This document shows, piece after piece, positions 2,767-25,200 of a DNA stretch of 64,000 nucleotides; within the stretch, counting starts at the first letter, position 1, and the number at the start of each line of letters is the position of its first letter. This DNA comes from Auanema rhodensis. Lineage: Eukaryota > Animalia > Nematoda. Below the pieces are notes generated by a model. That model saw nothing but the letters and a program-made list of their open reading frames with translations, made no database searches and was not told the DNA's origin. The stretch is taken from NCBI GenBank assembly GCA_964057225.1, contig OZ059899.1:8246001-8310000 (forward strand), read 5' to 3'. The translations under genes and the position numbers were made by a program.

Positions 2767-3211
2767 GAGAAAACAGATTATTGTTATAAACTAGTTAAAT
2801 TTTCAAAATTCTTCATATATATTATATATTATATAACTCCATTTCACATGTGATATATTATTAATTATGATAGTAATAGTAGCTCAATATACTGTCTACT
2901 TATCTTATATTTTTATTGTTTTCACAAAAACTTCATATTATACCATTACATCAAATCAATGAAATCCCTTCCATAATCTTTCTAATTACTCATCTGCCAA
3001 TTAAACCAAGAAGAAATTATTTTTGTTTTTCACTGCTCAGCCGAAATGTTTATTAGTTCATATATTCTATTTGTATATGGACATACTAGATTATATTTTT
3101 TCTTTTTTGAAATATATAAAAGATTATATTAAATATGTTTTATGAAATTATATATATGAGTGAAACAATATAATACTAAAATATCTAACAAGTACAAAAA
3201 GTTATAGAACC

Positions 3212-3512
3212 ACTGAGCGTCGTGGCGGGCGCTTGTGAGCCGGCTTCTAGGCAGTAGATGTTTGTGGATGAAGTGAGCTCAGGAGTTCTGGTTCAATTGT
3301 ATGCTACAACGACCGGGCGTCCAAGCCAAGCGTTGCGTCACCAGGGACTGACTTTCGAAAGAAAGACTGCCCCGGGTGGACAAGGAGAGGTGTAAGGCCC
3401 AGGCCCGCAAGGGAGCAAGCAAACGCCTCCGCGCGTTGCAGTGGTTGGATAGCGCCCATGAGTACTGTCTTCTGTCCAGCCTGAGCAACATCTTCAAACC
3501 AACCATCGTTTT
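3212..3512 (+). ncRNA. Metazoan SRP RNA (7SL), copy 1 of 42
   Basis: Colinear with metazoan 7SL over ~300 nt. 5' ACTGAGCGTCGTGGCGGGCGCTTGTGA compares with human GCCGGGCGCGGTGGCGCGTGCCTGTAG, and the Alu UGUNR motif is at 3234-3238. CAGGAGTTCTGG is present; helix 5 pairs GCTCAGG (3277-3283) with CCTGAGC (3480-3486). Helix 6 is CTTTC-GAAA-GAAAG (3352-3365). Helix 8 GGCCCAGGCCCGCAAGGGAGCAAG carries the SRP54-binding CAGG/AGCA loop and a GNRA tetraloop (human GGCCCAGGTCGGAAACGGAGCAGG). The 3' end CCAGCCTGAGCAACAT is followed by TTTT. Confidence 0.96.
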
Positions 3513-3520
3513 GAATTTTT
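3509..3520 (+). terminator. RNA polymerase III terminator (T4 then T5), repeated in every unit
   Basis: TTTT-GAA-TTTTT lies directly after the SRP 3' end. In units 14, 29 and 31 the second run is interrupted (TTGTT). Confidence 0.8.
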
Positions 3521-3533
3521 CAATCTCGAGCTC

Positions 3534-3563
3534 ATGTGCTGCAATTTGCGATATGTAGCACGT
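3534..3563. other. Spacer hairpin ATGTGCTGCA-N10-TGTAGCACGT (units 1-41)
   Basis: 10-bp stem (8 Watson-Crick pairs plus 2 G.U pairs on the + strand) with a 10-nt loop, extendable by CTC/GAG. Confidence 0.8.
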
Positions 3564-3581
3564 AGAGTAAGGTAGAGAACC

Positions 3582-6500
3582 ACTGAGCGTCGTGGCGGGC
3601 GCTTGTGAGCCGGCTTCTAGGCAGTAGATGTTTGTGGATGAAGTGAGCTCAGGAGTTCTGGTTCAGTTGTATGCTACAACGACCGGGCGTCCAAGCCAAG
3701 CGTTGCGTCACCAGGGACTGACTTTCGAAAGAAAGACTGCCCCGGGTGGACAAGGAGAGGTGTAAGGCCCAGGCCCGCAAGGGAGCAAGCAAAAGCCTCC
3801 GCGCGTTGCAGTGGTTGGATAGCGCCCATGAGTACTGTCTTCTGTCCAGCCTGAGCAACATCTTCAAACCAACCATCGTTTTGAATTTTTCAATCTCGAG
3901 CTCATGTGCTGCAATTTGCGATATGTAGCACGTAGAGTAAGGTAGAGAACCACTGAGCGTCGTGGCGGGCGCTTGTGAGCCGGCTTCTAGGCAGTAGATG
4001 TTTGTGGATGAAGTGAGCTCAGGAGTTCTGGTTCAGTTGTATGCTACAACGACCGGGCGTCCAAGCCAAGCGTTGCGTCACCAGGGACTGACTTTCGAAA
4101 GAAAGACTGCCCCGGGTGGACAAGGAGAGGTGTAAGGCCCAGGCCCGCAAGGGAGCAAGCAAAAGCCTCCGCGCGTTGCAGTGGTTGGATAGCGCCCATG
4201 AGTACTGTCTTCTGTCCAGCCTGAGCAACATCTTCAAACCAACCATCGTTTTGAATTTTTCAATCTCGAGCTCATGTGCTGCAATTTGCGATATGTAGCA
4301 CGTAGAGTAAGGTAGAGAACCACTGAGCGTCGTGGCGGGCGCTTGTGAGCCGGCTTCTAGGCAGTAGATGTTTGTGGATGAAGTGAGCTCAGGAGTTCTG
4401 GTTCAGTTGTATGCTACAACGACCGGGCGTCCAAGCCAAGCGTTGCGTCACCAGGGACTGACTTTCGAAAGAAAGACTGGCCTCCGCGCGTTGCAGTGGT
4501 TGGATAGCGCCCATGAGTACTGTCTTCTGTCCAGCCTGAGCAACATCTTCAAACCAACCATCGTTTTGAATTTTTCAATCTCGAGCTCATGTGCTGCAAT
4601 TTGCGATATGTAGCACGTAGAGTAAGGTAGAGAACCACTGAGCGTCGTGGCGGGCGCTTGTGAGCCGGCTTCTAGGCAGTAGATGTTTGTGGATGAAGTG
4701 AGCTCAGGAGTTCTGGTTCAGTTGTATGCTACAACGACCGGGCGTCCAAACCAAGCGTTGCGTCACCAGGGACTGACTTTCGAAAGAAAGACTGCCCCGG
4801 GTGGACAAGGAGAGGTGTAAGGCCCAGGCCCGCAAGGGAGCAAGCAAAAGCCTCCGCGCGTTGCAGTGGTTGGATAGCGCCCATGAGTACTGTCTTCTGT
4901 CCAGCCTGAGCAACATCTTCAAACCAACCATCGTTTTGAATTTTTCAATCTCGAGCTCATGTGCTGCAATTTGCGATATGTAGCACGTAGAGTAAGGTAG
5001 AGAACCACTGAGCGTCGTGGCGGGCGCTTGTGAGCCGGCTTCTAGGCAGTAGATGTTTGTGGATGAAGTGAGCTCAGGAGTTCTGGTTCAGTTGTATGCT
5101 ACAACGACCGGGCGTCCAAGCCAAGCGTTGCGTCACCAGGAACTGACTTTCGAAAGAAAGACTGCCCCGGGTGGACAAGGAGAGGTGTAAGGCCCAGGCC
5201 CGCAAGGGAGCAAGCAAAAGCCTCCGCGCGTTGCAGTGGTTGGATAGCGCCCATGAGTACTGTCTTCTGTCCAGCCTGAGCAACATCTTCAAACCAACCA
5301 TCGTTTTGAATTTTTCAATCTCGAGCTCATGTGCTGCAATTTGCGATATGTAGCACGTAGAGTAAGGTAGAGAACCACTGAGCGTCGTGGCGGGCGCTTG
5401 TGAGCCGGCTTCTAGGCAGTAGATGTTTGTGGATGAAGTGAGCTCAGGAGTTCTGGTTCAGTTGTATGCTACAACGACCGGGCGTCCAAGCCAAGCGTTG
5501 CGTCACCAGGGACTGACTTTCGAAAGAAAGACTGCCCCGGGTGGACAAGGAGAGGTGTAAGGCCCAGGCCCGCAAGGGAGCAAGCAAAAGCCTCCGCGCG
5601 TTGCAGTGGTTGGATAGCGCCCATGAGTACTGTCTTCTGTCCAGCCTGAGCAACATCTTCAAACCAACCATCGTTTTGAATTTTTCAATCTCGAGCTCAT
5701 GTGCTGCAATTCGCGATATGTAGCACGTAGAGTAAGGTAGAGAACCACTGAGCGTCGTGGCGGGCGCTTGTGAGCCGCCTTCTAGGCAGTAGATGTTTGT
5801 GGATGAAGTGAGCTCAGGAGTTCTGGTTCAGTTGTATGCTACAACGACCGGGCGTCCAAGCCAAGCGTTGCGTCACCAGGGACTGACTTTCGAAAGAAAG
5901 ACTGCCCCGGGTGGACAAGGAGAGGTGTAAGGCCCAGGCCCGCAAGGGAGCAAGCAAAAGCCTCCGCGCGTTGCAGTGGTTGGATAGCGCCCATGAGTAC
6001 TGTCTTCTGTCCAGCCTGAGCAACATCTTCAAACCAACCATCGTTTTGAATTTTTCAATCTCGAGCTCATGTGCTGCAATTTGCGATATGTAGCACGTAG
6101 AGTAAGGTAGAGAACCACTGAGCGTCGTGGCGGGCGCTTGTGAGCCGGCTTCTAGGCAGTAGATGTTTGTGGATGAAGTGAGCTCAGGAGTTCTGGTTCA
6201 GTTGTATGCTACAACGACCGGGCGTCCAAGCCAAGCGTTGCGTCACCAGGGACGGACTTTCGAAAGAAAGACTGCCCCGGGTGGACAAGGAGAGGTGTAA
6301 GGCCCAGGCCCGCAAGGGAGCAAGCAAAAGCCTCCGCGCGTTGCAGTGGTTGGATAGCGCCCATGAGTACTGTCTTCTGTCCAGCCTGAGCAACATCTTC
6401 AAACCAACCATCGTTTTGAATTTTTCAATCTCGAGCTCATGTGCTGCAATTTGCGATATGTAGCACGTAGAGTAAGGTAGAGAACCACTGAGCGTCGTGG

Positions 6501-9500
6501 CGGGCGCTTGTGAGCCGGCTTCTAGGCAGTAGATGTTTGTGGATGAAGTGAGCTCAGGAGTTCTGGTTCAGTTGTATGCTACAACGACCGGGCGTCCAAG
6601 CCAAGCGTTGCGTCACCAGGGACTGACTTTCGAAAGAAAGACTGCCCCGGGTGGACAAGGAGAGGTGTAAGGCCCAGGCCCGCAAGGGAGCAAGCAAAAG
6701 CCTCCGCGCGTTGCAGTGGTTGGATAGCGCCCATGAGTACTGTCTTCTGTCCAGCCTGAGCAACATCTTCAAACCAACCATCGTTTTGAATTTTTCAATC
6801 TCGAGCTCATGTGCTGCAATTTGCGATATGTAGCACGTAGAGTAAGGTAGAGAACCACTGAGCGTCGTGGCGGGCGCTTGTGAGCCGGCTTCTAGGCAGT
6901 AGATGTTTGTGGATGAAGTGAGCTCAGGAGTTCTGGTTCAGTTGTATGCTACAACGACCGGGCGTCCAAGCCAAGCGTTGCGTCACCAGGGACTGACTTT
7001 CGAAAGAAAGACTGCCCCGGGTGGACAAGGAGAGGTGTAAGGCCCAGGCCCGCAAGGGAGCAAGCAAAAGCCTCCGCGCGTTGCAGTGGTTGGATAGCGC
7101 CCATGAGTACTGTCTTCTGTCCAGCCTGAGCAACATCTTCAAACCAACCATCGTTTTGAATTTTTCAATCTCGAGCTCATGTGCTGCAATTTGCGATATG
7201 TAGCACGTAGAGTAAGGTAGAGAACCACTGAGCGTCGTGGCGGGCGCTTGTGAGCCGGCTTCTAGGCAGTAGATGTTTGTGGATGAAGTGAGCTCAGGAG
7301 TTCTGGTTCAGTTGTATGCTACAACGACCGGGCGTCCAAGCCAAGCGTTGCGTCACCAGGGACTGACTTTCGAAAGAAAGACTGCCCCGGGTGGACAAGG
7401 AGAGGTGTAAGGCCCAGGCCCGCAAGGGAGCAAGCAAAAGCCTCCGCGCGTTGCAGTGGTTGGATAGCGCCCATGAGTACTGTCTTCTGTCCAGCCTGAG
7501 CAACATCTTCAAACCAACCATCGTTTTGAATTTTTCAATCTCGAGCTCATGTGCTGCAATTTGCGATATGTAGCACGTAGAGTAAGGTAGAGAACCACTG
7601 AGCGTCGTGGCGGGCGCTTGTGAGCCGGCTTCTAGGCAGTAGATGTTTGTGGATGAAGTGAGTTCAGGAGTTCTGGTTCAGTTGTATGCTACAACGACCG
7701 GGCGTCCAAGCCAAGCGTTGCGTCACCAGGGACTGACTTTCGAAAGAAAGACTGCCCCGGGTGGACAAGGAGAGGTGTAAGGCCCAGGCCCGCAAGGGAG
7801 CAAGCAAAAGCCTCCGCGCGTTGCAGTGGTTGGATAGCGCCCATGAGTACTGTCTTCTGTCCAGCCTGAGCAACATCTTCAAACCAACCATCGTTTTGAA
7901 TTTTTCAATCTCGAGCTCATGTGCTGCAATTTGCGATATGTAGCACGTAGAGTAAGGTAGAGAACCACTGAGCGTCGTGGCGGGCGCTTGTGAGCCGGCT
8001 TCTAGGCAGTAGATGTTTGTGGATGAAGTGAGTTCAGGAGTTCTGGTTCAGTTGTATGCTACAACGACCGGGCGTCCAAGCCAAGCGTTGCGTCACCAGG
8101 GACTGACTTTCGAAAGAAAGACTGCCCCGGGTGGACAAGGAGAGGTGTAAGGCCCAGGCCCGCAAGGGAGCAAGCAAAAGCCTCCGCGCGTTGCAGTGGT
8201 TGGATAGCGCCCATGAGTACTGTCTTCTGTCCAGCCTGAGCAACATCTTCAAACCAACCATCGTTTTGAATTGTTCAATCTCGAGCTCATGTGCTGCAAT
8301 TTGCGATATGTAGCACGTAGAGTAAGGTAGAGAACCACTGAGCGTCGTGGCGGGCGCTTGTGAGCCGGCTTCTAGGCAGTAGATGTTTGTGGATGAAGTG
8401 AGCTCAGGAGTTCTGGTTCAGTTGTATGCTACAACGACCGGGCGTCCAAGCCAAGCGTTGCGTCACCAGGGACTGACTTTCGAAAGAAAGACTGCCCCGG
8501 GTGGACAAGGAGAGGTGTAAGGCCCAGGCCCGCAAGGGAGCAAGCAAAAGCCTCCTCGCGTTGCAGTGGTTGGATAGCGCCCATGAGTACTGTCTTCTGT
8601 CCAGCCTGAGCAACATCTTCAAACCAACCATCGTTTTGAATTTTTCAATCTCGAGCTCATGTGCTGCAATTCGCGATATGTAGCACGTAGAGTAAGGTAG
8701 AGAACCACTGAGCGTCGTGGCGGGCGCTTGTGAGCCGGCTTCTAGGCAGTAGATGTTTGTGGATGAAGTGAGTTCAGGAGTTCTGGTTCAGTTGTATGCT
8801 ACAACGACCGGGCGTCCAAGCCAAGCGTTGCGTCACCAGGGACTGACTTTCGAAAGAAAGACTGCCCCGGGTGGACAAGGAGAGGTGTAAGGCCCAGGCC
8901 CGCAAGGGAGCAAGCAAAAGCCTCCGCGCGTTGCAGTGGTTGGATAGCGCCCATGAGTACTGTCTTCTGTCCAGCCTGAGCAACATCTTCAAACCAACCA
9001 TCGTTTTGAATTTTTCAATCTCGAGCTCATGTGCTGCAATTTGCGATATGTAGCACGTAGAGTAAGGTAGAGAACCACTGAGCGTCGTGGCGGGCGCTTG
9101 TGAGCCGGCTTCTAGGCAGTAGATGTTTGTGGATGAAGTGAGCTCAGGAGTTCTGGTTCAGTTGTATGCTACAACGACCGGGCGTCCAAGCCAAGCGTTG
9201 CGTCACCAGGGACTGACTTTCGAAAGAAAGACTGCCCCGGGTGGACAAGGAGAGGTGTAAGGCCCAGGCCCGCAAGGGAGCAAGCAAAAGCCTCCGCGCG
9301 TTGCAGTGGTTGGATAGCGCCCATGAGTACTGTCTTCTGTCCAGCCTGAGCAACATCTTCAAACCAACCATCGTTTTGAATTTTTCAATCTCGAGCTCAT
9401 GTGCTGCAATTTGCGATATGTAGCACGTAGAGTAAGGTAGAGAACCACTGAGCGTCGTGGCGGGCGCTTGTGAGCCGGCTTCTAGGCAGTAGATGTTTGT

Positions 9501-12500
9501 GGATGAAGTGAGTTCAGGAGTTCTGGTTCAGTTGTATGCTACAACGACCGGGCGTCCAAGCCAAGCGTTGCGTCACCAGGGACTGACTTTCGAAAGAAAG
9601 ACTGCCCCGGGTGGACAAGGAGAGGTGTAAGGCCCAGGCCCGCAAGGGAGCAAGCAAAAGCCTCCGCGCGTTGCAGTGGTTGGATAGCGCCCATGAGTAC
9701 TGTCTTCTGTCCAGCCTGAGCAACATCTTCAAACCAACCATCGTTTTGAATTTTTCAATCTCGAGCTCATGTGCTGCAATTTGCGATATGTAGCACGTAG
9801 AGTAAGGTAGAGAACCACTGAGCGTCGTGGCGGGCGCTTGTGAGCCGGCTTCTAGGCAGTAGATGTTTGTGGATGAAGTGAGCTCAGGAGTTCTGGTTCA
9901 GTTGTATGCTACAACGACCGGGCGTCCAAGCCAAGCGTTGCGTCACCAGGGACTGACTTTCGAAAGAAAGACTGCCCCGGGTGGACAAGGAGAGGTGTAA
10001 GGCCCAGGCCCGCAAGGGAGCAAGCAAAAGCCTCCGCGCGTTGCAGTGGTTGGATAGCGCCCATGAGTACTGTCTTCTGTCCAGCCTGAGCAACATCTTC
10101 AAACCAACCATCGTTTTGAATTTTTCAATCTCGAGCTCATGTGCTGCAATTCGCGATATGTAGCACGTAGAGTAAGGTAGAGAACCACTGAGCGTCGTGG
10201 CGGGCGCTTGTGAGCCGGCTTCTAGGCAGTAGATGTTTGTGGATGAAGTGAGTTCAGGAGTTCTGGTTCAGTTGTATGCTACAACGACCGGGCGTCCAAG
10301 CCAAGCGTTGCGTCACCAGGGACTGACTTTCGAAAGAAAGACTGCCCCGGGTGGACAAGGAGAGGTGTAAGGCCCAGGCCCGCAAGGGAGCAAGCAAAAG
10401 CCTCCGCGCGTTGCAGTGGTTGGATAGCGCCCATGAGTACTGTCTTCTGTCCAGCCTGAGCAACATCTTCAAACCAACCATCGTTTTGAATTTTTCAATC
10501 TCGAGCTCATGTGCTGCAGTTTGCGATATGTAGCACGTAGAGTAAGGTAGAGAACCACTGAGCGTCGTGGCGGGCGCTTGTGAGCCGGCTTCTAGGCAGT
10601 AGATGTTTGTGGATGAAGTGAGTTCAGGAGTTCTGGTTCAGTTGTATGCTACAACGACCGGGCGTCCAAGCCAAACGTTGCGTCACCAGGGACTGACTTT
10701 CGAAAGAAAGACTGCCCCGGGTGGACAAGGAGAGGTGTAAGGCCCAGGCCCGCAAGGGAGCAAGCAAAAGCCTCCGCGCGTTGCAGTGGTTGGATAGCGC
10801 CCATGAGTACTGTCTTCTGTCCAGCCTGAGCAACATCTTCAAACCAACCATCGTTTTGAATTTTTCAATCTCGAGCTCATGTGCTGCAATTCGCGATATG
10901 TAGCACGTAGAGTAAGGTAGAGAACCACTGAGCGTCGTGGCGGGCGCTTGTGAGCCGCCTTCTAGGCAGTAGATGTTTGTGGATGAAGTGAGCTCAGGAG
11001 TTCTGGTTCAGTTGTATGCTACAACGACCGGGCGTCCAAGCCAAGCGTTGCGTCACCAGGGACTGACTTTCGAAAGAAAGACTGCCCCGGGTGGACAAGG
11101 AGAGGTGTAAGGCCCAGGCCCGCAAGGGAGCAAGCAAAAGCCTCCGCGCGTTGCAGTGGTTGGATAGCGCCCATGAGTACTGTCTTCTGTCCAGCCTGAG
11201 CAACATCTTCAAACCAACCATCGTTTTGAATTTTTCAATCTCGAGCTCATGTGCTGCAATTTGCGATATGTAGCACGTAGAGTAAGGTAGAGAACCACTG
11301 AGCGTCGTGGCGGGCGCTTGTGAGCCGGCTTCTAGGCAGTAGATGTTTGTGGATGAAGTGAGCTCAGGAGTTCTGGTTCAGTTGTATGCTACAACGACCG
11401 GGCGTCCAAGCCAAGCGTTGCGTCACCAGGGACGGACTTTCGAAAGAAAGACTGCCCCGGGTGGACAAGGAGAGGTGTAAGGCCCAGGCCCGCAAGGGAG
11501 CAAGCAAAAGCCTCCGCGCGTTGCAGTGGTTGGATAGCGCCCATGAGTACTGTCTTCTGTCCAGCCTGAGCAACATCTTCAAACCAACCATCGTTTTGAA
11601 TTTTTCAATCTCGAGCTCATGTGCTGCAATTTGCGATATGTAGCACGTAGAGTAAGGTAGAGAACCACTGAGCGTCGTGGCGGGCGCTTGTGAGCCGGCT
11701 TCTAGGCAGTAGATGTTTGTGGATGAAGTGAGCTCAGGAGTTCTGGTTCAGTTGTATGCTACAACGACCGGGCGTCCAAGCCAAGCGTTGCGTCACCAGG
11801 GACTGACTTTCGAAAGAAAGACTGCCCCGGGTGGACAAGGAGAGGTGTAAGGCCCAGGCCCGCAAGGGAGCAAGCAAAAGCCTCCGCGCGTTGCAGTGGT
11901 TGGATAGCGCCCATGAGTACTGTCTTCTGTCCAGCCTGAGCAACATCTTCAAACCAACCATCGTTTTGAATTTTTCAATCTCGAGCTCATGTGCTGCAAT
12001 TTGCGATATGTAGCACGTAGAGTAAGGTAGAGAACCACTGAGCGTCGTGGCGGGCGCTTGTGAGCCGGCTTCTAGGCAGTAGATGTTTGTGGATGAAGTG
12101 AGCTCAGGAGTTCTGGTTCAGTTGTATGCTACAACGACCGGGCGTCCAAGCCAAGCGTTGCGTCACCAGGGACTGACTTTCGAAAGAAAGACTGCCCCGG
12201 GTGGACAAGGAGAGGTGTAAGGCCCAGGCCCGCAAGGGAGCAAGCAAAAGCCTCCGCGCGTTGCAGTGGTTGGATAGCGCCCATGAGTACTGTCTTCTGT
12301 CCAGCCTGAGCAACATCTTCAAACCAACCATCGTTTTGAATTTTTCAATCTCGAGCTCATGTGCTGCAATTTGCGATATGTAGCACGTAGAGTAAGGTAG
12401 AGAACCACTGAGCGTCGTGGCGGGCGCTTGTGAGCCGGCTTCTAGGCAGTAGATGTTTGTGGATGAAGTGAGCTCAGGAGTTCTGGTTCAGTTGTATGCT

Positions 12501-15500
12501 ACAACGACCGGGCGTCCAAGCCAAGCGTTGCGTCACCAGGGACTGACTTTCGAAAGAAAGACTGCCCCGGGTGGACAAGGAGAGGTGTAAGGCCCAGGCC
12601 CGCAAGGGAGCAAGCAAAAGCCTCCGCGCGTTGCAGTGGTTGGATAGCGCCCATGAGTACTGTCTTCTGTCCAGCCTGAGCAACATCTTCAAACCAACCA
12701 TCGTTTTGAATTTTTCAATCTCGAGCTCATGTGCTGCAATTTGCGATATGTAGCACGTAGAGTAAGGTAGAGAACCACTGAGCGTCGTGGCGGGCGCTTG
12801 TGAGCCGGCTTCTAGGCAGTAGATGTTTGTGGATGAAGTGAGCTCAGGAGTTCTGGTTCAGTTGTATGCTACAACGACCGGGCGTCCAAGCCAAGCGTTG
12901 CGTCACCAGGGACTGACTTTCGAAAGAAAGACTGCCCCGGGTGGACAAGGAGAGGTGTAAGGCCCAGGCCCGCAAGGGAGCAAGCAAAAGCCTCCGCGCG
13001 TTGCAGTGGTTGGATAGCGCCCATGAGTACTGTCTTCTGTCCAGCCTGAGCAACATCTTCAAACCAACCATCGTTTTGAATTTTTCAATCTCGAGCTCAT
13101 GTGCTGCAATTTGCGATATGTAGCACGTAGAGTAAGGTAGAGAACCACTGAGCGTCGTGGCGGGCGCTTGTGAGCCGGCTTCTAGGCAGTAGATGTTTGT
13201 GGATGAAGTGAGTTCAGGAGTTCTGGTTCAGTTGTATGCTACAACGACCGGGCGTCCAAGCCAAGCGTTGCGTCACCAGGGACTGACTTTCGAAAGAAAG
13301 ACTGCCCCGGGTGGACAAGGAGAGGTGTAAGGCCCAGGCCCGCAAGGGAGCAAGCAAAAGCCTCCGCGCGTTGCAGTGGTTGGATAGCGCCCATGAGTAC
13401 TGTCTTCTGTCCAGCCTGAGCAACATCTTCAAACCAACCATCGTTTTGAATTTTTCAATCTCGAGCTCATGTGCTGCAATTTGCGATATGTAGCACGTAG
13501 AGTAAGGTAGAGAACCACTGAGCGTCGTGGCGGGCGCTTGTGAGCCGGCTTCTAGGCAGTAGATGTTTGTGGATGAAGTGAGTTCAGGAGTTCTGGTTCA
13601 GTTGTATGCTACAACGACCGGGCGTCCAAGCCAAGCGTTGCGTCACCAGGGACTGACTTTCGAAAGAAAGACTGCCCCGGGTGGACAAGGAGAGGTGTAA
13701 GGCCCAGGCCCGCAAGGGAGCAAGCAAAAGCCTCCGCGCGTTGCAGTGGTTGGATAGCGCCCATGAGTACTGTCTTCTGTCCAGCCTGAGCAACATCTTC
13801 AAACCAACCATCGTTTTGAATTGTTCAATCTCGAGCTCATGTGCTGCAATTTGCGATATGTAGCACGTAGAGTAAGGTAGAGAACCACTGAGCGTCGTGG
13901 CGGGCGCTTGTGAGCCGGCTTCTAGGCAGTAGATGTTTGTGGATGAAGTGAGCTCAGGAGTTCTGGTTCAGTTGTATGCTACAACGACCGGGCGTCCAAG
14001 CCAAGCGTTGCGTCACCAGGGACTGACTTTCGAAAGAAAGACTGCCCCGGGTGGACAAGGAGAGGTGTAAGGCCCAGGCCCGCAAGGGAGCAAGCAAAAG
14101 CCTCCTCGCGTTGCAGTGGTTGGATAGCGCCCATGAGTACTGTCTTCTGTCCAGCCTGAGCAACATCTTCAAACCAACCATCGTTTTGAATTTTTCAATC
14201 TCGAGCTCATGTGCTGCAATTCGCGATATGTAGCACGTAGAGTAAGGTAGAGAACCACTGAGCGTCGTGGCGGGCGCTTGTGAGCCGGCTTCTAGGCAGT
14301 AGATGTTTGTGGATGAAGTGAGTTCAGGAGTTCTGGTTCAGTTGTATGCTACAACGACCGGGCGTCCAAGCCAAGCGTTGCGTCACCAGGGACTGACTTT
14401 CGAAAGAAAGACTGCCCCGGGTGGACAAGGAGAGGTGTAAGGCCCAGGCCCGCAAGGGAGCAAGCAAAAGCCTCCGCGCGTTGCAGTGGTTGGATAGCGC
14501 CCATGAGTACTGTCTTCTGTCCAGCCTGAGCAACATCTTCAAACCAACCATCGTTTTGAATTGTTCAATCTCGAGCTCATGTGCTGCAATTTGCGATATG
14601 TAGCACGTAGAGTAAGGTAGAGAACCACTGAGCGTCGTGGCGGGCGCTTGTGAGCCGGCTTCTAGGCAGTAGATGTTTGTGGATGAAGTGAGCTCAGGAG
14701 TTCTGGTTCAGTTGTATGCTACAACGACCGGGCGTCCAAGCCAAGCGTTGCGTCACCAGGGACTGACTTTCGAAAGAAAGACTGCCCCGGGTGGACAAGG
14801 AGAGGTGTAAGGCCCAGGCCCGCAAGGGAGCAAGCAAAAGCCTCCTCGCGTTGCAGTGGTTGGATAGCGCCCATGAGTACTGTCTTCTGTCCAGCCTGAG
14901 CAACATCTTCAAACCAACCATCGTTTTGAATTTTTCAATCTCGAGCTCATGTGCTGCAATTCGCGATATGTAGCACGTAGAGTAAGGTAGAGAACCACTG
15001 AGCGTCGTGGCGGGCGCTTGTGAGCCGGCTTCTAGGCAGTAGATGTTTGTGGATGAAGTGAGTTCAGGAGTTCTGGTTCAGTTGTATGCTACAACGACCG
15101 GGCGTCCAAGCCAAGCGTTGCGTCACCAGGGACTGACTTTCGAAAGAAAGACTGCCCCGGGTGGACAAGGAGAGGTGTAAGGCCCAGGCCCGCAAGGGAG
15201 CAAGCAAAAGCCTCCGCGCGTTGCAGTGGTTGGATAGCGCCCATGAGTACTGTCTTCTGTCCAGCCTGAGCAACATCTTCAAACCAACCATCGTTTTGAA
15301 TTTTTCAATCTCGAGCTCATGTGCTGCAATTTGCGATATGTAGCACGTAGAGTAAGGTAGAGAACCACTGAGCGTCGTGGCGGGCGCTTGTGAGCCGGCT
15401 TCTAGGCAGTAGATGTTTGTGGATGAAGTGAGCTCAGGAGTTCTGGTTCAGTTGTATGCTACAACGACCGGGCGTCCAAGCCAAGCGTTGCGTCACCAGG

Positions 15501-18500
15501 GACTGACTTTCGAAAGAAAGACTGCCCCGGGTGGACAAGGAGAGGTGTAAGGCCCAGGCCCGCAAGGGAGCAAGCAAAAGCCTCCGCGCGTTGCAGTGGT
15601 TGGATAGCGCCCATGAGTACTGTCTTCTGTCCAGCCTGAGCAACATCTTCAAACCAACCATCGTTTTGAATTTTTCAATCTCGAGCTCATGTGCTGCAAT
15701 TTGCGATATGTAGCACGTAGAGTAAGGTAGAGAACCACTGAGCGTCGTGGCGGGCGCTTGTGAGCCGGCTTCTAGGCAGTAGATGTTTGTGGATGAAGTG
15801 AGTTCAGGAGTTCTGGTTCAGTTGTATGCTACAACGACCGGGCGTCCAAGCCAAGCGTTGCGTCACCAGGGACTGACTTTCGAAAGAAAGACTGCCCCGG
15901 GTGGACAAGGAGAGGTGTAAGGCCCAGGCCCGCAAGGGAGCAAGCAAAAGCCTCCGCGCGTTGCAGTGGTTGGATAGCGCCCATGAGTACTGTCTTCTGT
16001 CCAGCCTGAGCAACATCTTCAAACCAACCATCGTTTTGAATTTTTCAATCTCGAGCTCATGTGCTGCAATTTGCGATATGTAGCACGTAGAGTAAGGTAG
16101 AGAACCACTGAGCGTCGTGGCGGGCGCTTGTGAGCCGGCTTCTAGGCAGTAGATGTTTGTGGATGAAGTGAGTTCAGGAGTTCTGGTTCAGTTGTATGCT
16201 ACAACGACCGGGCGTCCAAGCCAAACGTTGCGTCACCAGGGACTGACTTTCGAAAGAAAGACTGCCCCGGGTGGACAAGGAGAGGTGTAAGGCCCAGGCC
16301 CGCAAGGGAGCAAGCAAAAGCCTCCGCGCGTTGCAGTGGTTGGATAGCGCCCATGAGTACTGTCTTCTGTCCAGCCTGAGCAACATCTTCAAACCAACCA
16401 TCGTTTTGAATTTTTCAATCTCGAGCTCATGTGCTGCAATTTGCGATATGTAGCACGTAGAGTAAGGTAGAGAACCACTGAGCGTCGTGGCGGGCGCTTG
16501 TGAGCCGGCTTCTAGGCAGTAGATGTTTGTGGATGAAGTGAGCTCAGGAGTTCTGGTTCAGTTGTATGCTACAACGACCGGGCGTCCAAGCCAAGCGTTG
16601 CGTCACCAGGGACTGACTTTCGAAAGAAAGACTGCCCCGGGTGGACAAGGAGAGGTGTAAGGCCCAGGCCCGCAAGGGAGCAAGCAAAAGCCTCCGCGCG
16701 TTGCAGTGGTTGGATAGCGCCCATGAGTACTGTCTTCTGTCCAGCCTGAGCAACATCTTCAAACCAACCATCGTTTTGAATTTTTCAATCTCGAGCTCAT
16801 GTGCTGCAATTTGCGATATGTAGCACGTAGAGTAAGGTAGAGAACCACTGAGCGTCGTGGCGGGCGCTTGTGAGCCGGCTTCTAGGCAGTAGATGTTTGT
16901 GGATGAAGTGAGCTCAGGAGTTCTGGTTCAGTTGTATGCTACAACGACCGGGCGTCCAAGCCAAGCGTTGCGTCACCAGGGACTGACTTTCGAAAGAAAG
17001 ACTGCCCCGGGTGGACAAGGAGAGGTGTAAGGCCCAGGCCCGCAAGGGAGCAAGCAAAAGCCTCCGCGCGTTGCAGTGGTTGGATAGCGCCCATGAGTAC
17101 TGTCTTCTGTCCAGCCTGAGCAACATCTTCAAACCAACCATCGTTTTGAATTTTTCAATCTCGAGCTCATGTGCTGCAATTTGCGATATGTAGCACGTAG
17201 AGTAAGGTAGAGAACCACTGAGCGTCGTGGCGGGCGCTTGTGAGCCGGCTTCTAGGCAGTAGATGTTTGTGGATGAAGTGAGCTCATGAGTTCTGGTTCA
17301 GTTGTATGCTACAACGACCGGGCGTCCAAGCCAAGCGTTGCGTCACCAGGGACTGACTTTCGAAAGAAAGACTGCCCCGGGTGGACAAGGAGAGGTGTAA
17401 GGCCCAGGCCCGCAAGGGAGCAAGCAAAAGCCTCCGCGCGTTGCAGTGGTTGGATAGCGCCCATGAGTACTGTCTTCTGTCCAGCCTGAGCAACATCTTC
17501 AAACCAACCATCGTTTTGAATTTTTCAATCTCGAGCTCATGTGCTGCAATTCGCGATATGTAGCACGTAGAGTAAGGTAGAGAACCACTGAGCGTCGTGG
17601 CGGGCGCTTGTGAGCCGGCTTCTAGGCAGTAGATGTTTGTGGATGAAGTGAGTTCAGGAGTTCTGGTTCAGTTGTATGCTACAACGACCGGGCGTCCAAG
17701 CCAAGCGTTGCGTCACCAGGGACTGACTTTCGAAAGAAAGACTGCCCCGGGTGGACAAGGAGAGGTGTAAGGCCCAGGCCCGCAAGGGAGCAAGCAAAAG
17801 CCTCCGCGCGTTGCAGTGGTTGGATAGCGCCCATGAGTACTGTCTTCTGTCCAGCCTGAGCAACATCTTCAAACCAACCATCGTTTTGAATTTTTCAATC
17901 TCGAGCTCATGTGCTGCAATTTGCGATATGTAGCACGTAGAGTAAGGTAGAGAACCACTGAGCGTCGTGGCGGGCGCTTGTGAGCCGGCTTCTAGGCAGT
18001 AGATGTTTGTGGATGAAGTGAGCTCAGGAGTTCTGGTTCAGTTGTATGCTACAACGACCGGGCGTCCAAGCCAAGCGTTGCGTCACCAGGGACTGACTTT
18101 CGAAAGAAAGACTGCCCCGGGTGGACAAGGAGAGGTGTAAGGCCCAGGCCCGCAAGGGAGCAAGCAAAAGCCTCCGCGCGTTGCAGTGGTTGGATAGCGC
18201 CCATGAGTACTGTCTTCTGTCCAGCCTGAGCAACATCTTCAAACCAACCATCGTTTTGAATTTTTCAATCTCGAGCTCATGTGCTGCAATTTGCGATATG
18301 TAGCACGTAGAGTAAGGTAGAGAACCACTGAGCGTCGTGGCGGGCGCTTGTGAGCCGGCTTCTAGGCAGTAGATGTTTGTGGATGAAGTGAGCTCAGGAG
18401 TTCTGGTTCAGTTGTATGCTACAACGACCGGGCGTCCAAGCCAAGCGTTGCGTCACCAGGGACTGACTTTCGAAAGAAAGACTGCCCCGGGTGGACAAGG

Positions 18501-18627
18501 AGAGGTGTAAGGCCCAGGCCCGCAAGGGAGCAAGCAAAAGCCTCCGCGCGTTGCAGTGGTTGGATAGCGCCCATGAGTACTGTCTTCTGTCCAGCCTGAG
18601 CAACATCTTCAAACCAACCATCGTTTT
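3582..18627 (+). ncRNA. SRP RNA (7SL) copies 2-42, one per unit (RNA runs from about unit start +6 to +306); 40 of these 41 are full length
   Basis: Same sequence and motifs as copy 1, with only scattered SNPs. The last copy is at 18327-18627. Expression of individual copies cannot be determined from sequence. Confidence 0.93.
4322..4567 (+). pseudogene. SRP RNA copy 4 with a 55-nt S-domain deletion
   Basis: The junction GAAAGACTG|GCCTCCG at 4479/4480 removes CCCCGGGTGG...GCAAGCAAAA (55 nt), which includes the helix 8 SRP54-binding loop and tetraloop. Confidence 0.85.
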
Positions 18628-18645
18628 GAATTTTTCAATCTCGAG

Positions 18646-18725
18646 CAAAAATCAAAACTATAACAAAATTACGTGCTACATATCGCAAATTGCAGCACGT
18701 AATTTTGTTATAGTTTTGATTTTTG
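18646..18725. repeat. 80-bp palindrome with perfect 32-bp arms (possible MITE-like element)
   Basis: CAAAAATCAAAACTATAACAAAATTACGTGCT (18646-18677) is the exact reverse complement of 18694-18725, around a 16-nt centre. It is followed by TA. The inverted repeat is certain; MITE identity is inference. Confidence 0.9.
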
Positions 18726-18813
18726 TATACAATGTATTATCGTTATAATTTGTCATTGTTTTCTTTTAATTTTAAAGTTTTGCAATAATTCATATTTAAA
18801 ACATTAAGAATGT

Positions 18814-18819
18814 TTTATT
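18814..18819 (-). promoter_or_regulatory. Candidate polyadenylation signal (AATAAA) of the RasGAP gene
   Basis: AATAAA on the - strand ~390 nt downstream of the stop codon. The motif is common in AT-rich DNA. Confidence 0.35.
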
Positions 18820-19206
18820 TGAATAAATTTCTATATGTAAATATAAACGCATCGTAGATGTCATCAGCAACGTACGAAAAAATTCCCGAATAGGAGATTA
18901 CAACGAAAAGCGCAGAAAGGAACTCATGTGAGTTATAAGAGGTTAAATCTGAGCATAGTTGTTTTGTAAAGCAAATTAAGTAGTGGATGGAAATAATGGG
19001 AAAAAGAAAATAGAGAAAATTGGGGAGATATTCAGAGATTAGTGGTGAATAAGCTTTATGTACAATAGTGATGATGCATCCGTGGATGGTAAGCTCGAAC
19101 AAAACTTATTAGGAATAACATAAAAATAAATAGAATTATATATATTCACGAAATATCACAAGTCTATACCCAGGTAATCACATTAGATCAAACAGAAGTT
19201 TCATGC

Positions 19207-22200
19207 TTATTGACAGGATTGAATAGGTTTAGGTGTCCGTTCGATAGAGGACCGGGAATCGTAGATTTTCTCGGATGCTCCAGTGGTAGATCGTTTATCT
19301 TTATCAGTTTTACTAGCGGCAGCTACGTGACGTTTTAATTCTTCATTTTCCAAAATTAACCTTTCAATAACACGTCGTTGATCTTCAATAATTTTTTCCT
19401 GCAAAAGCATTCATATTAAAATACTCTTATACTAATTAGGCACCTGGTCACTTATTACAGGAGGTTTTTCGTATAAATTATTATTCCATGTGTTTGGAAC
19501 AGCATTATCTCTTCGAGGAACAGCATTCGAGCGATCCCAGTCATCACCGGGAATAACATCTATTACAGTAGGCCGGAGCATCGCAGATGTCCGAGACATT
19601 CGTGGGTTTGTTCTCGGCATATTTGAAGTTCGTGGTGATATTTCACATTCGGAAGGGGTTCCATACATCTGTAAAAAACATTTAGTACAAAAAAAGAAAA
19701 AAACTAAATATTACTTGATTAGAGTATCCTGTATATGGTTCTTCATGTTCATAATTACTAGGGCTAGAGCTACGGTATATCGAACTGCTGTAACTGTTAC
19801 CATATCCAGATGGCCCCGGATGCATATCAGGAACAGAATTGGGACTATAGCCGGAATTGGCCATAGATAAAGTTCCCAAACGATCAACAGGGGATGATGA
19901 AGCAGATGAATTGCTATAGCTGCTGCTATGATTATTACTATGGTAGCCAGAAGAAGGAGGTAGGCTTCCTGTATCAGGACTTCCATCAATTCTTCGCTTC
20001 GACTTTCGCGATCGCATTCGTTCAGCTCTCAGCTAAAACAAAAGATAGTTAAAAATAAAACTGTCAATTTCTAAGTTACCTCGCTATCGCTATCAGTATC
20101 TCGAGCTTCACAGCTACTACTTGTTTTATCACTGGTTCTGCTACTTGATGTACCCGTCTCATCACTTAACCGTGCTAGATGACGGGAAGGTGTGGCCTAG
20201 AATAATAGGAATTAAAAAAGAGACTTGAAAAATTGAAAATTGAAGTTTGTGACTTTTTGAGGTTTTTGAGAAGTCATAGTGGATTATTGTCACCCATTTA
20301 TACTTTTTTAACTTTTTAAACACCCGAAAAAACGTAAAAACATAATTAAGCGATATTCACTAAATACTTACCACTAAAGCTGAGCTAGTCACATAATCGT
20401 CACTCGTCATTAAATGAGCTGCAGGGCGATTGCGCGAAACGACGGTGGCCTGTCCAGTTGGTGGAGTACTCCGATAGGCTGGTACATTTTCATTTCGTGG
20501 TCGAAGAACTGTTTGTTGTTGAGGACTATTCTCATAATCGCTACTTGCTTGATGCAGCATGGGTGAACTGCTAGGCATGCCTACAGAACGACGTTTGTGT
20601 TCCCGAAGGTCTCCCAGAATAGCCCTTAGATCAACCAATCGACGATCAATTGAAGCTTTCTCATGAATCTCTGGTGTCCATGACTCTTCGAGATATGTAG
20701 TCAGCAAGCTCAACTCCTTGCCAAGATCAACGTGAACGTCGGATCTCGATGGAGTATCGCAAGGCCCAGAGGAAATGAAAAGTAGGAAATCCTTCATTCG
20801 TTGCCATTCTCTTTCCACAAACTTATTCATGAACTCCATGTAATGTTCTTTTCCACCAAACTTAGTGAAGTTTGCGAGATTTTGAAGAGTCTTAGCAATA
20901 AGAGTCAAATTTCTAGCAGTTGTACTGGACGGATATTCCGTACACTGAAAAGGTTTAACAATAGGAATATATTATGAATGATAGATATTACCAGACTGAA
21001 AAGGCTAGGACTCAAAATAGCCGGACAGAGATATCGCAAGAAAATAGAAGACGAAATAAGCGTATCAGCTAGTCCACCACGTCCTTGTGCTTCTAATCTG
21101 TCTCGGAGTGTATAGAACACGTCGCGTAATTCAAGAGGAAGATCGTTCGTACTGAAATAAGTGCAAACAATAAGCTGTCAACGAATCAGAAGAAAGATTT
21201 AAGTGACAAATCGTTTAGCTATATATATATATATATAATTTTTTCATTCATTTATATATATATATGAGCGGCATCTTACCTATTAAGAATACAGGACCAG
21301 GCTTTTTCCACACAATCCATTAATAAAGTTCTATTACGTTCCAAGGTTGGTGGTGAAACAGAAGAAAGCTTTAAAGGATCTACTTCACAAGATTCCGTCA
21401 TTGAAAGTAAGTCTTGGGTTAAACTGCCTAGTGTATTCTAAAGAGCGGGTTTGAAATGGTCATGGCGTTCACAATCTAACCTGTAGATAGTCTTGCGATA
21501 CTAATTTCATATAGGCTTCCATAGCCTTAGTTGCTAAAGAGTTGCCACGGAACATCAAGTGATCATTATCTAAAATACAAAATGTTGATTTTAAGACCAA
21601 TCAATCTTACCCAGCAAATTTACTTCCGACATTATAAGATCGCACAAGAAGTCTTTAGCTAGCTTCTGTCGATGTAAAATACGCACAAGAGTAGTTGCGA
21701 GATCCTCTTTAGCTTTTACTGACAAAATAGGCTCTAGTTGAGCACATAGGGGTAAGTAGTTGTACGTAAGGAAATGAAGTAAGTCATCATAGGCTCGTAA
21801 AGGCAAAATCTCGACTGATTGCCATCGTGCTTTGATACGAATGGCTGGTTGATCCATTTGAGTGTTTTTAGCACCAAGAGCATGAACTAGACGATTTCCG
21901 GTATCACTTGTAGTAGTAACGGTATACCTGAAAAACTTAGATGTAGGTTGTTGATATTAATTTAAGCAGAATTTTTCTATTCGAATAGTTATTCGAAATA
22001 TTTAGTATTTTTTATTAATTCACAAAATTTCAAAGGAAATCATCCAGTTTTCTTCCAATAGTTACCTGCAGTAACTTCCGAAAATAGACGCTAAACGAAT
22101 ATAATTTTTCCTCAACCGGAATGTCCAACGCATAAAATTCGTTAAAACCCGGCGATCGTTAGAAAACTCTGCTCCAAACCCGTTGCCCTCAGAAGCAATT

Positions 22201-25200
22201 GTTAGAGGTAGAGCGAAGGATGGAGAAAAATAGAAACTATGCTCTCTATCCCGCTGCCGTCGCCCCATACCTATAGGAATGATACCTTATGCATGGGTGT
22301 TAATTCATCGATAACGACAATAAAATAACATAGAAACGTTTGAAAAGGATATATATATATATATAAATGTATAATGCAAACTAAAGATTATGAGGTACGC
22401 ACTATCGATGACTCCTCCCAAAGTCATCAGCAGTCACCCACGGAAAGCAAGCATTCTAGTTTAACTGTCTCTCTTCAATCGTCATTTGATCGGTAAACAG
22501 ACGCGATCGCAACTAATGAATCTTTTGCTCGAGATATGTTAAAGAATAATCATAAGTCAAAATTTCAATTATAGAAGTTCGCATTAACATCAAAAGAAAA
22601 TTAATTAGACGTTAGAAATTCAAACGATAGAATCTTCATAATCAGAACGGATAATAACATCATATGATAATATCTGTTAAGAAAAAGATGTATATAATCC
22701 TAAAAGTAGAGCAAATCAAGCAAACCATTACTAAATCAAAACGTTTTCCCGTCAACATGTGTTAAATCAAGTAGTTATCTTTCGATAAAGACTAAGATAA
22801 CACATTAGGTGATGTTACGACATATTGAATATTAGGGAAATTGTCAGAAAACAGAAATTAATTTTCAAGAATGCATTGAAGGAAAAACAGTTTTTAATTT
22901 ACGGTTCGAAAAATCAGTTCAATCAAATGCTAATGAAAATTGAAGAAGTCACGAAGAATATAAAAAAATTGGGTAAATGATGAAAGTATCAAGGAATTCC
23001 GAAAGTGCATAGTAAATATCATTTGAAGAAAAAGCCAAACGGTTCGAAATAGAAAACGTTATCAAGGGGGTTAGAAGCCAAGTTCTGAGAAGTCAGAAAC
23101 AACGAGCGACCCATATTTCATTTAAAATCGCCGATTTTATATCACGTTTAAGATAAGCATTCCTGTGAATGTTAGGCTAAACAACACTAACACTTCTGGA
23201 GTGAACCAGCTTTGAAATCTATAGTATTAGGCATGCCACCTTCTGGCTGTCACTGGGCTCGTCCTTGATTGTGGTACGCAACAGTAGCAAACCACAACTG
23301 TTGAAATCATTTCATTACCCCAGCCTTACTATGTTTCTCTCCATCTCCACCTCTAATACCGACTATAAATTGAACCTAAGTGCGCTTCTGAACCTTTGCT
23401 GTCTCCCATTTTCACTATCTCAGGGTCATTGTAATTAAAAAGAAGGTGGAGGAAAAAACCTCTCGCCAAACCATGCAATGACCGTCAGTATTAAAATATA
23501 AGGTGAAATCTGGTTGGTCTAAACAGTGCCCCCCGGTGACCAAATCTATTTGATTATTGGGTAAACACCCCATTATTCTAAACAAAAAAATGGAGAACTA
23601 ACCATCGTTCAACGGGATGTCTACTAGTAAGTTGGTCAATTCCAATCATTACATATCCAATCAATTGTGAACGATCTTTCTTTTTCTTTGGATCAGCTTC
23701 TCTATATATATTCACACATAGTTGCTCATATTTCGGAAGCATTCTGAATAAAATGAATTATTTACCATAATTGAACGGAAACTTACGGAAAATCAAAATG
23801 CTCTCCCCAAAATACGTTATCTGTTCTAGGTTTAGCTGTGGTTCGTGCATGCAATACCTTGTCAAGACATATTTCACAAAAATATCTGAATAATATCTCA
23901 TTATATTAGACTTAGAAATTACGAATACTGACCTTCGCTTAGCTGCTAATCCTTTTGCTTCTAATAGCCAAAGCTGCAAACAATTTTCTACTCTCCGCTG
24001 CAGATCTTGCCGCGGATTCATTGTCCTCCGAAGGCTGAAATAAAAAAGATGCTGAATTGAAAAAGTCAGAAATAGATTTCTTGTATTGATGAAAAGTAGG
24101 TATCAAAAAACAATGAAAATAGAGGCGATGTAAGTATGAAAAGTATACCGAAAATAAGAGAAGTGAGGTGAACCAGGTCATGGAACATAACATATGGGAA
24201 GGATAGTAAAAATTATTTTCGTGTATAAAAATAATTTGTTTCGATTGGTGACAATTGGAAAGACGAGCAAGAACTTTCATAATGGAACATCAAAAAACAA
24301 AATTCCAGATCTAATATAGTGCAATGAGAAGAACAATTACTTATGAAATCGATAGTTACGAAGAACAGAGGATCAAACAGAAAGTAATATCGGTCCTCAT
24401 AAGAAAAAATACTAAAATTAACTCTTCAATATTGCAGAGCAACATAATTAGATAATAGATGCAGAGAATAACAGTTTGCTAACAGCTGCTCAATGATCAT
24501 GTAGTATTGGCTCAGTATAAACCTCTATATGTATGTGAGATTGATGTGGCAAAACTAAACCTATGGAAGACAGGTGCACACAGCTGACCGGACGGACCAA
24601 CATAACAGATCACAAAAGGAAATAGCATATGCATACAGGGGTTACCGCTTTCTGTTAGATCCAATGCCACCGGTTTAGGACGTTGGCAACAACAAATAAT
24701 GGCCAAACCATTAATTTGCTTTACTTTACAAATAAGTCGCTCGATTTTGAGGGAAAAGGAGAGCAAGATAAAATAAAAATTAGATTAAGAGAATGGGCTC
24801 TCTAAGGCTTAATTATAGATGAGCAAGAAATAATTAAGATAACTCGATATAGAACTTATTTCATTTCATTTGGCACATAGTGTTTTGAAGAAAACGAGAG
24901 GAAACAGAAATCATGTTTCATGAGGTATTGATAACAAAAAATGAAACTAGTATTGAAAGTTCACAAGACAATTTCGCCGAAATCATCAAAGAAATGCGGA
25001 AATGTGAAAAGGGGAGAGTTATTCAAAAGAAAGTCTGCAGATTATTTGTAAAACTATAACCTATTTCAAATAAATAACGAGGGTAGTACAAAACTATAAG
25101 AAAAACTATGAAGTCATTCTCTGACGTAGACGGCAAACAAAGAGCTTCAGGGAAAGCTACAAACAGCATAGACAAAACTTGGTCGAACTATACAAGCAAG

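Follow-up and report, generated by a model that had tools for sequence, protein, structure and literature searches.

A tandem array of SRP (7SL) RNA genes in a nematode genome stops at a long palindrome whose centre recurs, in inverted form, in every spacer of the array. The question that this locus raises is one of order: was the spacer copied from the palindrome, or was the palindrome built from a spacer? A preliminary description of the locus preferred the first order, in which the palindrome came first, the spacer was copied from it and amplification followed, and kept the second as a fallback. The choice matters because, if the palindrome came first, a whole Pol III array unit was built by templated inversion and then amplified. 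The window analysed here is the whole 64-kb stretch C7:8246001-8310000; contig C7 is ~21 Mb long and belongs to a 181-Mb nematode assembly.

The array is flanked by two genes whose 3' ends converge on it: on the left a filamin gene, with its stop codon at 2766, ~440 bp away, and on the right a RasGAP-like gene, whose last coding ORF extends down to 19207, ~480 bp to the right of the palindrome (Table 1). Both array flanks are single-copy in the genome, including the right flank from 18700 to 19200. TRF gives the array a period of 370 with 99% matches, and the 370-bp unit comprises a 298-nt gene, T-runs and a 72-nt spacer, with 0-3 positions per unit deviating from the array consensus. The Rfam family RF00017 has 42 matches in the array, scoring 198-207 bits with the exception of one at 129 bits (cut-off 70); the array units carry the full-length match above the gathering score by which a metazoan SRP RNA gene is recognized. 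The low-scoring copy is unit 4 (4320-4634), which is 315 bp long. A clean 55-bp deletion inside its gene, with a junction near 4480 that lacks microhomology, takes out part of the SRP S-domain and lowers the Rfam score, and the copy has probably ceased to function as a gene. Further on (window 5745-16474), units 22-36 repeat the succession of SNPs seen in units 8-21, a pattern indicating a putative recent duplication of a ~14-unit block (roughly 5.2 kb) within the array, of the type expected from unequal (sister-chromatid) exchange. Of the two modes of amplification named in the preliminary description, rolling circle and unequal exchange, it is the second on which the SNP pattern bears.

The palindrome is 80 nt long (18646-18725), with perfect 32-nt arms (32/32) around a 16-nt loop. 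The array stops exactly at this structure, as the preliminary description had stated: the final array base, C18646, is also the first base of the palindrome. The inverted-repeat finder agrees, reporting 35-nt arms (18646-18680 and 18691-18725) at 97% complementarity. The single-stranded DNA fold of the palindrome has an energy of -34.4 kcal/mol (z = -11.6 relative to shuffled sequence), and the palindrome is the sole long one within the window that is not an (AT)n tract.

Table 1 Features of the array, its edges and its neighbours (positions are those of the window).
Feature	Position	Strand	Basis and remarks
Filamin gene, last exon region, left neighbour	2146..2766	+	ORF; PF00630; best matches are nematode filamins
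Left flank of first gene, diverged in-register homologue of the spacer's last 30 nt	3176..3205	+	Alignment to spacer
Tandem SRP (7SL) RNA gene array, 42 copies	3206..18646	+	TRF and Rfam RF00017
Core of last complete spacer, representing all 41	18281..18309	+	Inverted-repeat finder, genome search, hairpin fold
Last SRP RNA gene of array	18327..18624	+	RF00017; followed by T-runs and the final array bases to CTCGAGC (18640-18646)
Palindrome left arm	18646..18677	+	Inverted-repeat finder; arm unique in genome
Palindrome centre, 29 nt	18670..18698	-	Identical to majority spacer core
Palindrome loop, 16 nt	18678..18693	+	Spacer loop in flipped orientation
Palindrome right arm	18694..18725	+	Inverted-repeat finder
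RasGAP-like gene, right neighbour	19303..24042	-	ORF; collinear tblastx match to relative contig L030, which has PF00616

Several searches bear on whether the palindrome belongs to a larger family. A search of the 181-Mb genome for the arm 28-mer, allowing up to 3 mismatches, recovers the two arms and nothing else, and BLAST of the 91-nt palindrome region against the genome returns the self-match only. No Rfam family matches at the palindrome, and there is no target-site duplication in its immediate flanks, which read TCGAG (left) and TATAC (right). Because arm, core and the two flanks do not recur outside this locus in the genome, the palindrome is not a mobile or dispersed element. A dispersed palindrome family, a foldback transposon and a MITE were thus rejected on the grounds of single copy number and the missing target-site duplication. 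A hairpin-primed (rolling-hairpin) replicon with flip/flop termini was also set aside: the palindrome is internal to a 21-Mb contig, with the array on one side and a single-copy gene flank on the other.

The part of the palindrome that relates it to the array is its centre. Each spacer has a core formed by a 5-bp stem, GTGCT/AGCAC, and a 16-nt loop, the hairpin fold of which is marginal (z = -1.7 to -2.5). The core of the last complete spacer (18281-18309) is 100% complementary to the palindrome centre (18670-18698) over 29 nt, one more than the 28 nt previously claimed, and the same exact reverse complement is present in every spacer apart from SNPs in the loop. There are 33 spacers with the majority core, 7 with T>C in the loop and 1 with A>G. 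Genome-wide and with up to 3 mismatches, the core 28-mer is found on the minus strand 41 times, once per spacer (33 exact, 8 with one loop SNP), and on the plus strand once, in the palindrome; a reversed control pattern has 0 matches genome-wide. Since the stem is self-complementary, it is only the 16-nt loop that is truly flipped, and this inversion holds relative to 41/41 spacers. The unit junction reads as the composite that was described, running from CTCGAGC through TCAT and the inverted palindrome core to the start of the next gene.

A diverged counterpart of the core is found at the opposite edge of the array. The stretch to the left of the first gene (3176-3205), which is outside any unit junction, is homologous in register with the gene start to the 3' part of the spacer, spanning the 3' half of the core loop, the right stem and 12 nt beyond. 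It matches the spacer at 18/30 positions (P = 3e-5 against the window background), and the 14 nt that overlap the core match at 11/14 (P = 9e-5). The left flank scores 17/26 in register, compared with 13/26 at the best of 712 other offsets against the unit. The preliminary description had considered that the 28-mer might be a normal flank of dispersed SRP genes. Taken literally this fails, as the 28-mer is confined genome-wide to the spacers and the palindrome, but the diverged left-edge copy fills that role.

The same upstream sequence is recognizable at a second locus. The genome's other SRP genes are a 33-copy array on contig C6 with a 361-bp unit and one single gene on C7 (C7:7951156-7951455, equivalent to L025:857-1156), situated 295 kb upstream of the C7 array, with a score of 214.5 bits and unrelated flanks; the single gene may be a conserved 'housekeeping' locus ancestral to the arrays. 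The un-homogenized upstream flank of the first C6-array gene (L013:1463-1497) matches the C7 spacer (window 3545-3579) in register at 19/35 positions (P = 4e-4), and it matches the C6 spacer at 17/31 (P = 0.0016). By alignment, the three SRP gene versions differ at roughly 10-15% of positions, as estimated by reading, and this divergence together with the C6 flank match implies that the upstream sequence predates both arrays. The comparison suggests that the C6 and C7 arrays may descend from one gene copy with at least 35 nt of upstream DNA. The in-register matches of the left flank and of the C6 flank argue that the core is ancestral; judged by sequence, its 3' half is inherited upstream DNA that predates both arrays, and not junction filler. 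The ~12 nt past the terminator, TTTTGA(A)TTTTT, are also common to the C6 and C7 arrays.

The core contains a TATA-like ATATGTA, ~30 nt upstream of the next gene. It resembles the TATGTA that lies ~25 nt upstream of each gene in a tandem array of U6 snRNA genes (C1:6375156-6386113; at least 48 copies of a 226-bp unit). From its position and this likeness, the core ATATGTA may be the TATA-like box of an external Pol III promoter. The possible reading of the core as an inherited promoter draws on just two array-edge flanks. The spacer and the region upstream of the single-copy SRP gene (L025) align at chance level (local p = 0.43, anchored global p = 0.18), and a homology between them that had been seen by eye (CTCATGT, ACGTAG..AAGGT) was dropped for this reason.

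The two edges of the array differ in age. The left flank deviates from the spacer at 9/26 sites, whereas the palindrome centre deviates at 0/29 (Fisher p = 5e-4). Taken with the 32/32 identity of the arms, this contrast makes the palindrome much younger than the left edge of the array. Orientation gives the direction of change: the ATAT of the loop adjoins the right stem in the left flank and in the spacers, and the left stem in the palindrome. Because the left-flank homologue has the spacer orientation, the flipped copy in the palindrome is the derived one. The older left-flank homologue and the 0/29 against 9/26 contrast both speak against the order preferred in the preliminary description, and the left-flank homology and the youth of the palindrome make its fallback, a palindrome built from a spacer, the better reading. 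For this Pol III array the two edges thus have different relative ages, with an old and decayed left edge and a young and rearranged right edge.

We consider it probable, by a modest measure, that the palindrome is a young by-product of the array and not its seed, produced by a single template switch at the terminal spacer. For the reconstruction, the ancestor was assumed to have a last unit that continued as consensus spacer through AGCAC, followed by the present sequence from 18699; the predicted ancestral allele is an ordinary terminal spacer joined to GTAATTTT. This ancestor derives from the 41 paralogous spacers, not from an orthologous outgroup, and the pre-event allele is hypothetical. 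A four-point template switch applied to it yields the observed 161 nt exactly. In this reconstruction, 30 nt are replaced by 52 nt, the order of the points is 1-3-4-2, and the microhomology is 1 nt on leaving and 5 nt on returning. Given the assumed ancestor, two switch points and a single copying of nearby sequence as its reverse complement account for the whole cluster of mutations. The position of point 2, ahead of point 1, requires an inter-strand switch (PMC7954356). The mechanistic class proposed previously, namely template switching or fold-back at a hairpin-prone site, stands.

In the proposed event, the array would have ended on its right side in the core of the terminal spacer, a weak hairpin, which abutted the unique AT-rich flank. 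A strand being extended by replication or repair synthesis would have departed from its template after CTCGAGC (C18646), annealed to the opposite-sense strand 1 nt past the future right arm and begun copying just left of G18725, through a 1-nt C:G microhomology; the first base of the left arm, C18646, is common to the array and accounts for this 1-nt microhomology. Copying backwards, it would have crossed the flank for 23 nt and then the whole hairpin, from the right stem through the loop to the left stem, before returning to the original template through the 5-nt AGCAC homology. The outcome would be the conversion of a 5-bp stem into perfect 32-bp arms, with the loop inverted. The left arm would then be new DNA, copied in inverted form from the right stem and the right flank; the right arm would be original sequence, in which the right stem of the terminal spacer core is joined to the unique AT-rich flank. 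The starting material is at hand in the array, where the 5-bp stem with its 16-nt loop is present as a shorter inverted repeat in 41/41 spacers, which are paralogues and not an orthologous pre-event allele. We infer the ancestral allele, the timing of the event, the acting polymerase and the promoter role of the core.

An orthologous empty site was sought with word searches using the filamin and RasGAP exons, and no close relative was found. In the best relative contig (L030, Logan run ERR7979893) the RasGAP gene is collinear, with 81% DNA identity in the single alignable exon stretch. Its downstream neighbour (L030:12500-12950) is different and is not filamin, and there is no SRP gene within 1.67 kb. 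Local gene order downstream of RasGAP thus differs between the two species, and this relative is too distant to polarize the event.

The template-switch model requires that the spacer core abut the AT-rich flank at the junction between AGCACGTA and ATTTT. Past AGCACGTA, the right flank has no in-register similarity to the rest of the unit. The possibility that the right flank is a decayed array unit was rejected, since no trace of the unit extends past AGCACGTA and the comparison of 18737-18754 with the 3' end of the gene gives p = 0.17. Left and right flanks show no significant homology to each other in either orientation (p = 0.40 and 0.15). The heptamer GTTATAG is present both left of the first gene (3200-3206) and in the right arm (18706-18712), each time 5-6 nt after GTA, at a place where the internal spacers carry GGTAGAG; this could be a shared ancestral state or chance.

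Together, the left-flank homology and the right-edge core of the model imply that one and the same 14-nt stretch formerly bounded the array on either side. This leaves two possibilities: a right boundary that was already a secondary breakpoint, or an array that started between short direct repeats. Other array ends in the genome are relevant here. The right boundary of the C6 SRP array is sharp and of arbitrary phase, and the downstream end of the U6 array is an abrupt stop inside a U6 copy; the sharp, arbitrary-phase ends of these arrays suggest secondary breakpoints. A 6-bp inverted repeat, ATTGAA/TTCAAT, across the right junction of the C6 array (L026:644-660) was dismissed as chance, there being 8 such pairs per 221 nt in this AT-rich sequence. 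The core 28-mer and a terminal palindrome are both missing from the C6 array and from the single-copy SRP locus, and the U6 array end also lacks a palindrome. The idea that a family of such palindromes borders other tandem ncRNA arrays is therefore not sustained, as none occurs at the C6 SRP or U6 array ends and the arms are unique. The palindrome event leaves the origin of the array and the assembly of the repeat unit unexplained.

Other accounts of the palindrome must be set against a single replicative switch. The most serious, although an unlikely one, also has the spacer come first but invokes repair of a break by polymerase-theta-type end joining, possibly with the loss of distal units. 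A break in or beyond the last spacer would be followed by joining or extension of the flank-side 3' end on the spacer through GTA microhomology, snap-back on the new 8-bp stem, copying of 23 nt of its own flank and ligation to CTCGAGC. In its favour, the right boundary of the array is perfectly sharp and of arbitrary phase like those of the C6 SRP and U6 arrays, which suggests secondary breakpoints, the junctions have microhomologies of 1 nt (C/G) and 3-5 nt, and templated insertions derived from the flank are known in C. elegans (PMC7368036, PMC8654963). The difficulty is the loop, which plain snap-back would leave in spacer orientation; flipping it needs an extra switch to the opposite-sense strand of the duplex or the sister chromatid, so that this route has more steps than the single replicative switch that reproduces the sequence. 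The preferred order of the preliminary description can be given the form of a pre-existing, cruciform-prone palindrome downstream of a single SRP gene, which templates the first duplication junction before the unit is amplified, an inverted copy of its centre filling the junction as TCAT, 29 nt and 12 nt. We regard this as distinctly improbable, along with a milder variant in which the spacer hairpin would itself be recombinogenic and drive both the expansion of the array and the fold-back at its edge. In favour of the palindrome-first order, the exact 29-nt inverted match is no more than 25 nt from where the array ends, junctions are known to carry templated inverted fillers, and local alignment finds no relationship of the C7 spacer to the flanks or spacers of the other SRP loci, the C6 spacer included. 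Yet upstream of the first gene, at a place with no junction, there is an in-register homologue (11/14) for the 3'-terminal 14 nt of what would be filler, and the 18/30 match over the whole 30 nt upstream is highly non-random. Separation of spacer and palindrome at the birth of the array also predicts a divergence similar to that of the left flank (9/26), and 0/29 is found. The TCAT is left unexplained, and a 3' end at CTCGAGC would have its template further downstream in the same strand, out of reach of simple snap-back in cis.

Two further readings would remove the event or give it another meaning. Assemblers find array edges hard, and the palindrome is seen in the assembly only, at the edge of a 15-kb array of near-identical units; an assembly or consensus artefact is nonetheless very improbable, because the palindrome occupies only 80 bp between the array and a single-copy flank that runs into the collinear RasGAP gene, and because fold-back chimaeras at the read level are long mirror images, not short internal palindromes with base-exact junctions. 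Least probable of all is a functional or mobile element, whether a miniature foldback transposon, a hairpin-RNA gene, or a selected array boundary or fork barrier. The great stability of the hairpin and its position exactly at the array boundary would suit such an element, but no further copy of its arms exists in the 181 Mb at up to 3 mismatches, it has neither a target-site duplication nor an Rfam match, and the ends of the C6 SRP and U6 arrays are without anything like it.

The single template switch that we favour shares features with other systems in which inverted sequence is generated or maintained. Polymerase-theta end joining in C. elegans is documented to give flank-derived templated insertions and tandem-duplication junctions (PMC7368036, PMC8654963), and has in common with this locus a nematode setting, inverted sequence templated by the flank at a junction and microhomology of 1-5 nt. 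It differs in that the loop orientation of the palindrome takes an extra step. Typical polymerase-theta templated inserts are shorter than the tract copied here. The non-coding 'flip-flop' inversions of chloroplasts and the terminal hairpins of parvoviruses also combine an identical stem with a loop in two orientations. Unlike in those systems, the two orientations here are found at different places, in 41 spacers and in one palindrome; they do not alternate at a single site or at the ends of a replicon.

The closest likeness is to short-range template-switch mutations, comprising the Ripley quasipalindrome, Löytynoja-Goldman four-point and yeast arm-expansion cases. In these, as is proposed here, a short imperfect inverted repeat becomes long and perfect and its spacer is inverted; the proposed event also has in common with them two switches, small microhomologies, a copied tract within tens of bases and an inter-strand path. 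The four-point model and inter-strand events have been described (PMC7954356), and at yeast REG2 intermolecular switching turned a 5-bp inverted repeat into perfect 16-bp arms and inverted the spacer in one event (PMC8604942). The type of mutation is thus already known, and the palindrome is a fresh instance of it and no new mechanism. It is a natural example for which 41 paralogous copies provide a built-in 'before' sequence for one template switch. Compared with the yeast cases in coding sequence, in which the spacer changes by 2-5 bp, the 52-nt tract, 32-bp arms and 16-nt inverted spacer are larger, and the location, at the edge of an array of Pol III genes, is different.
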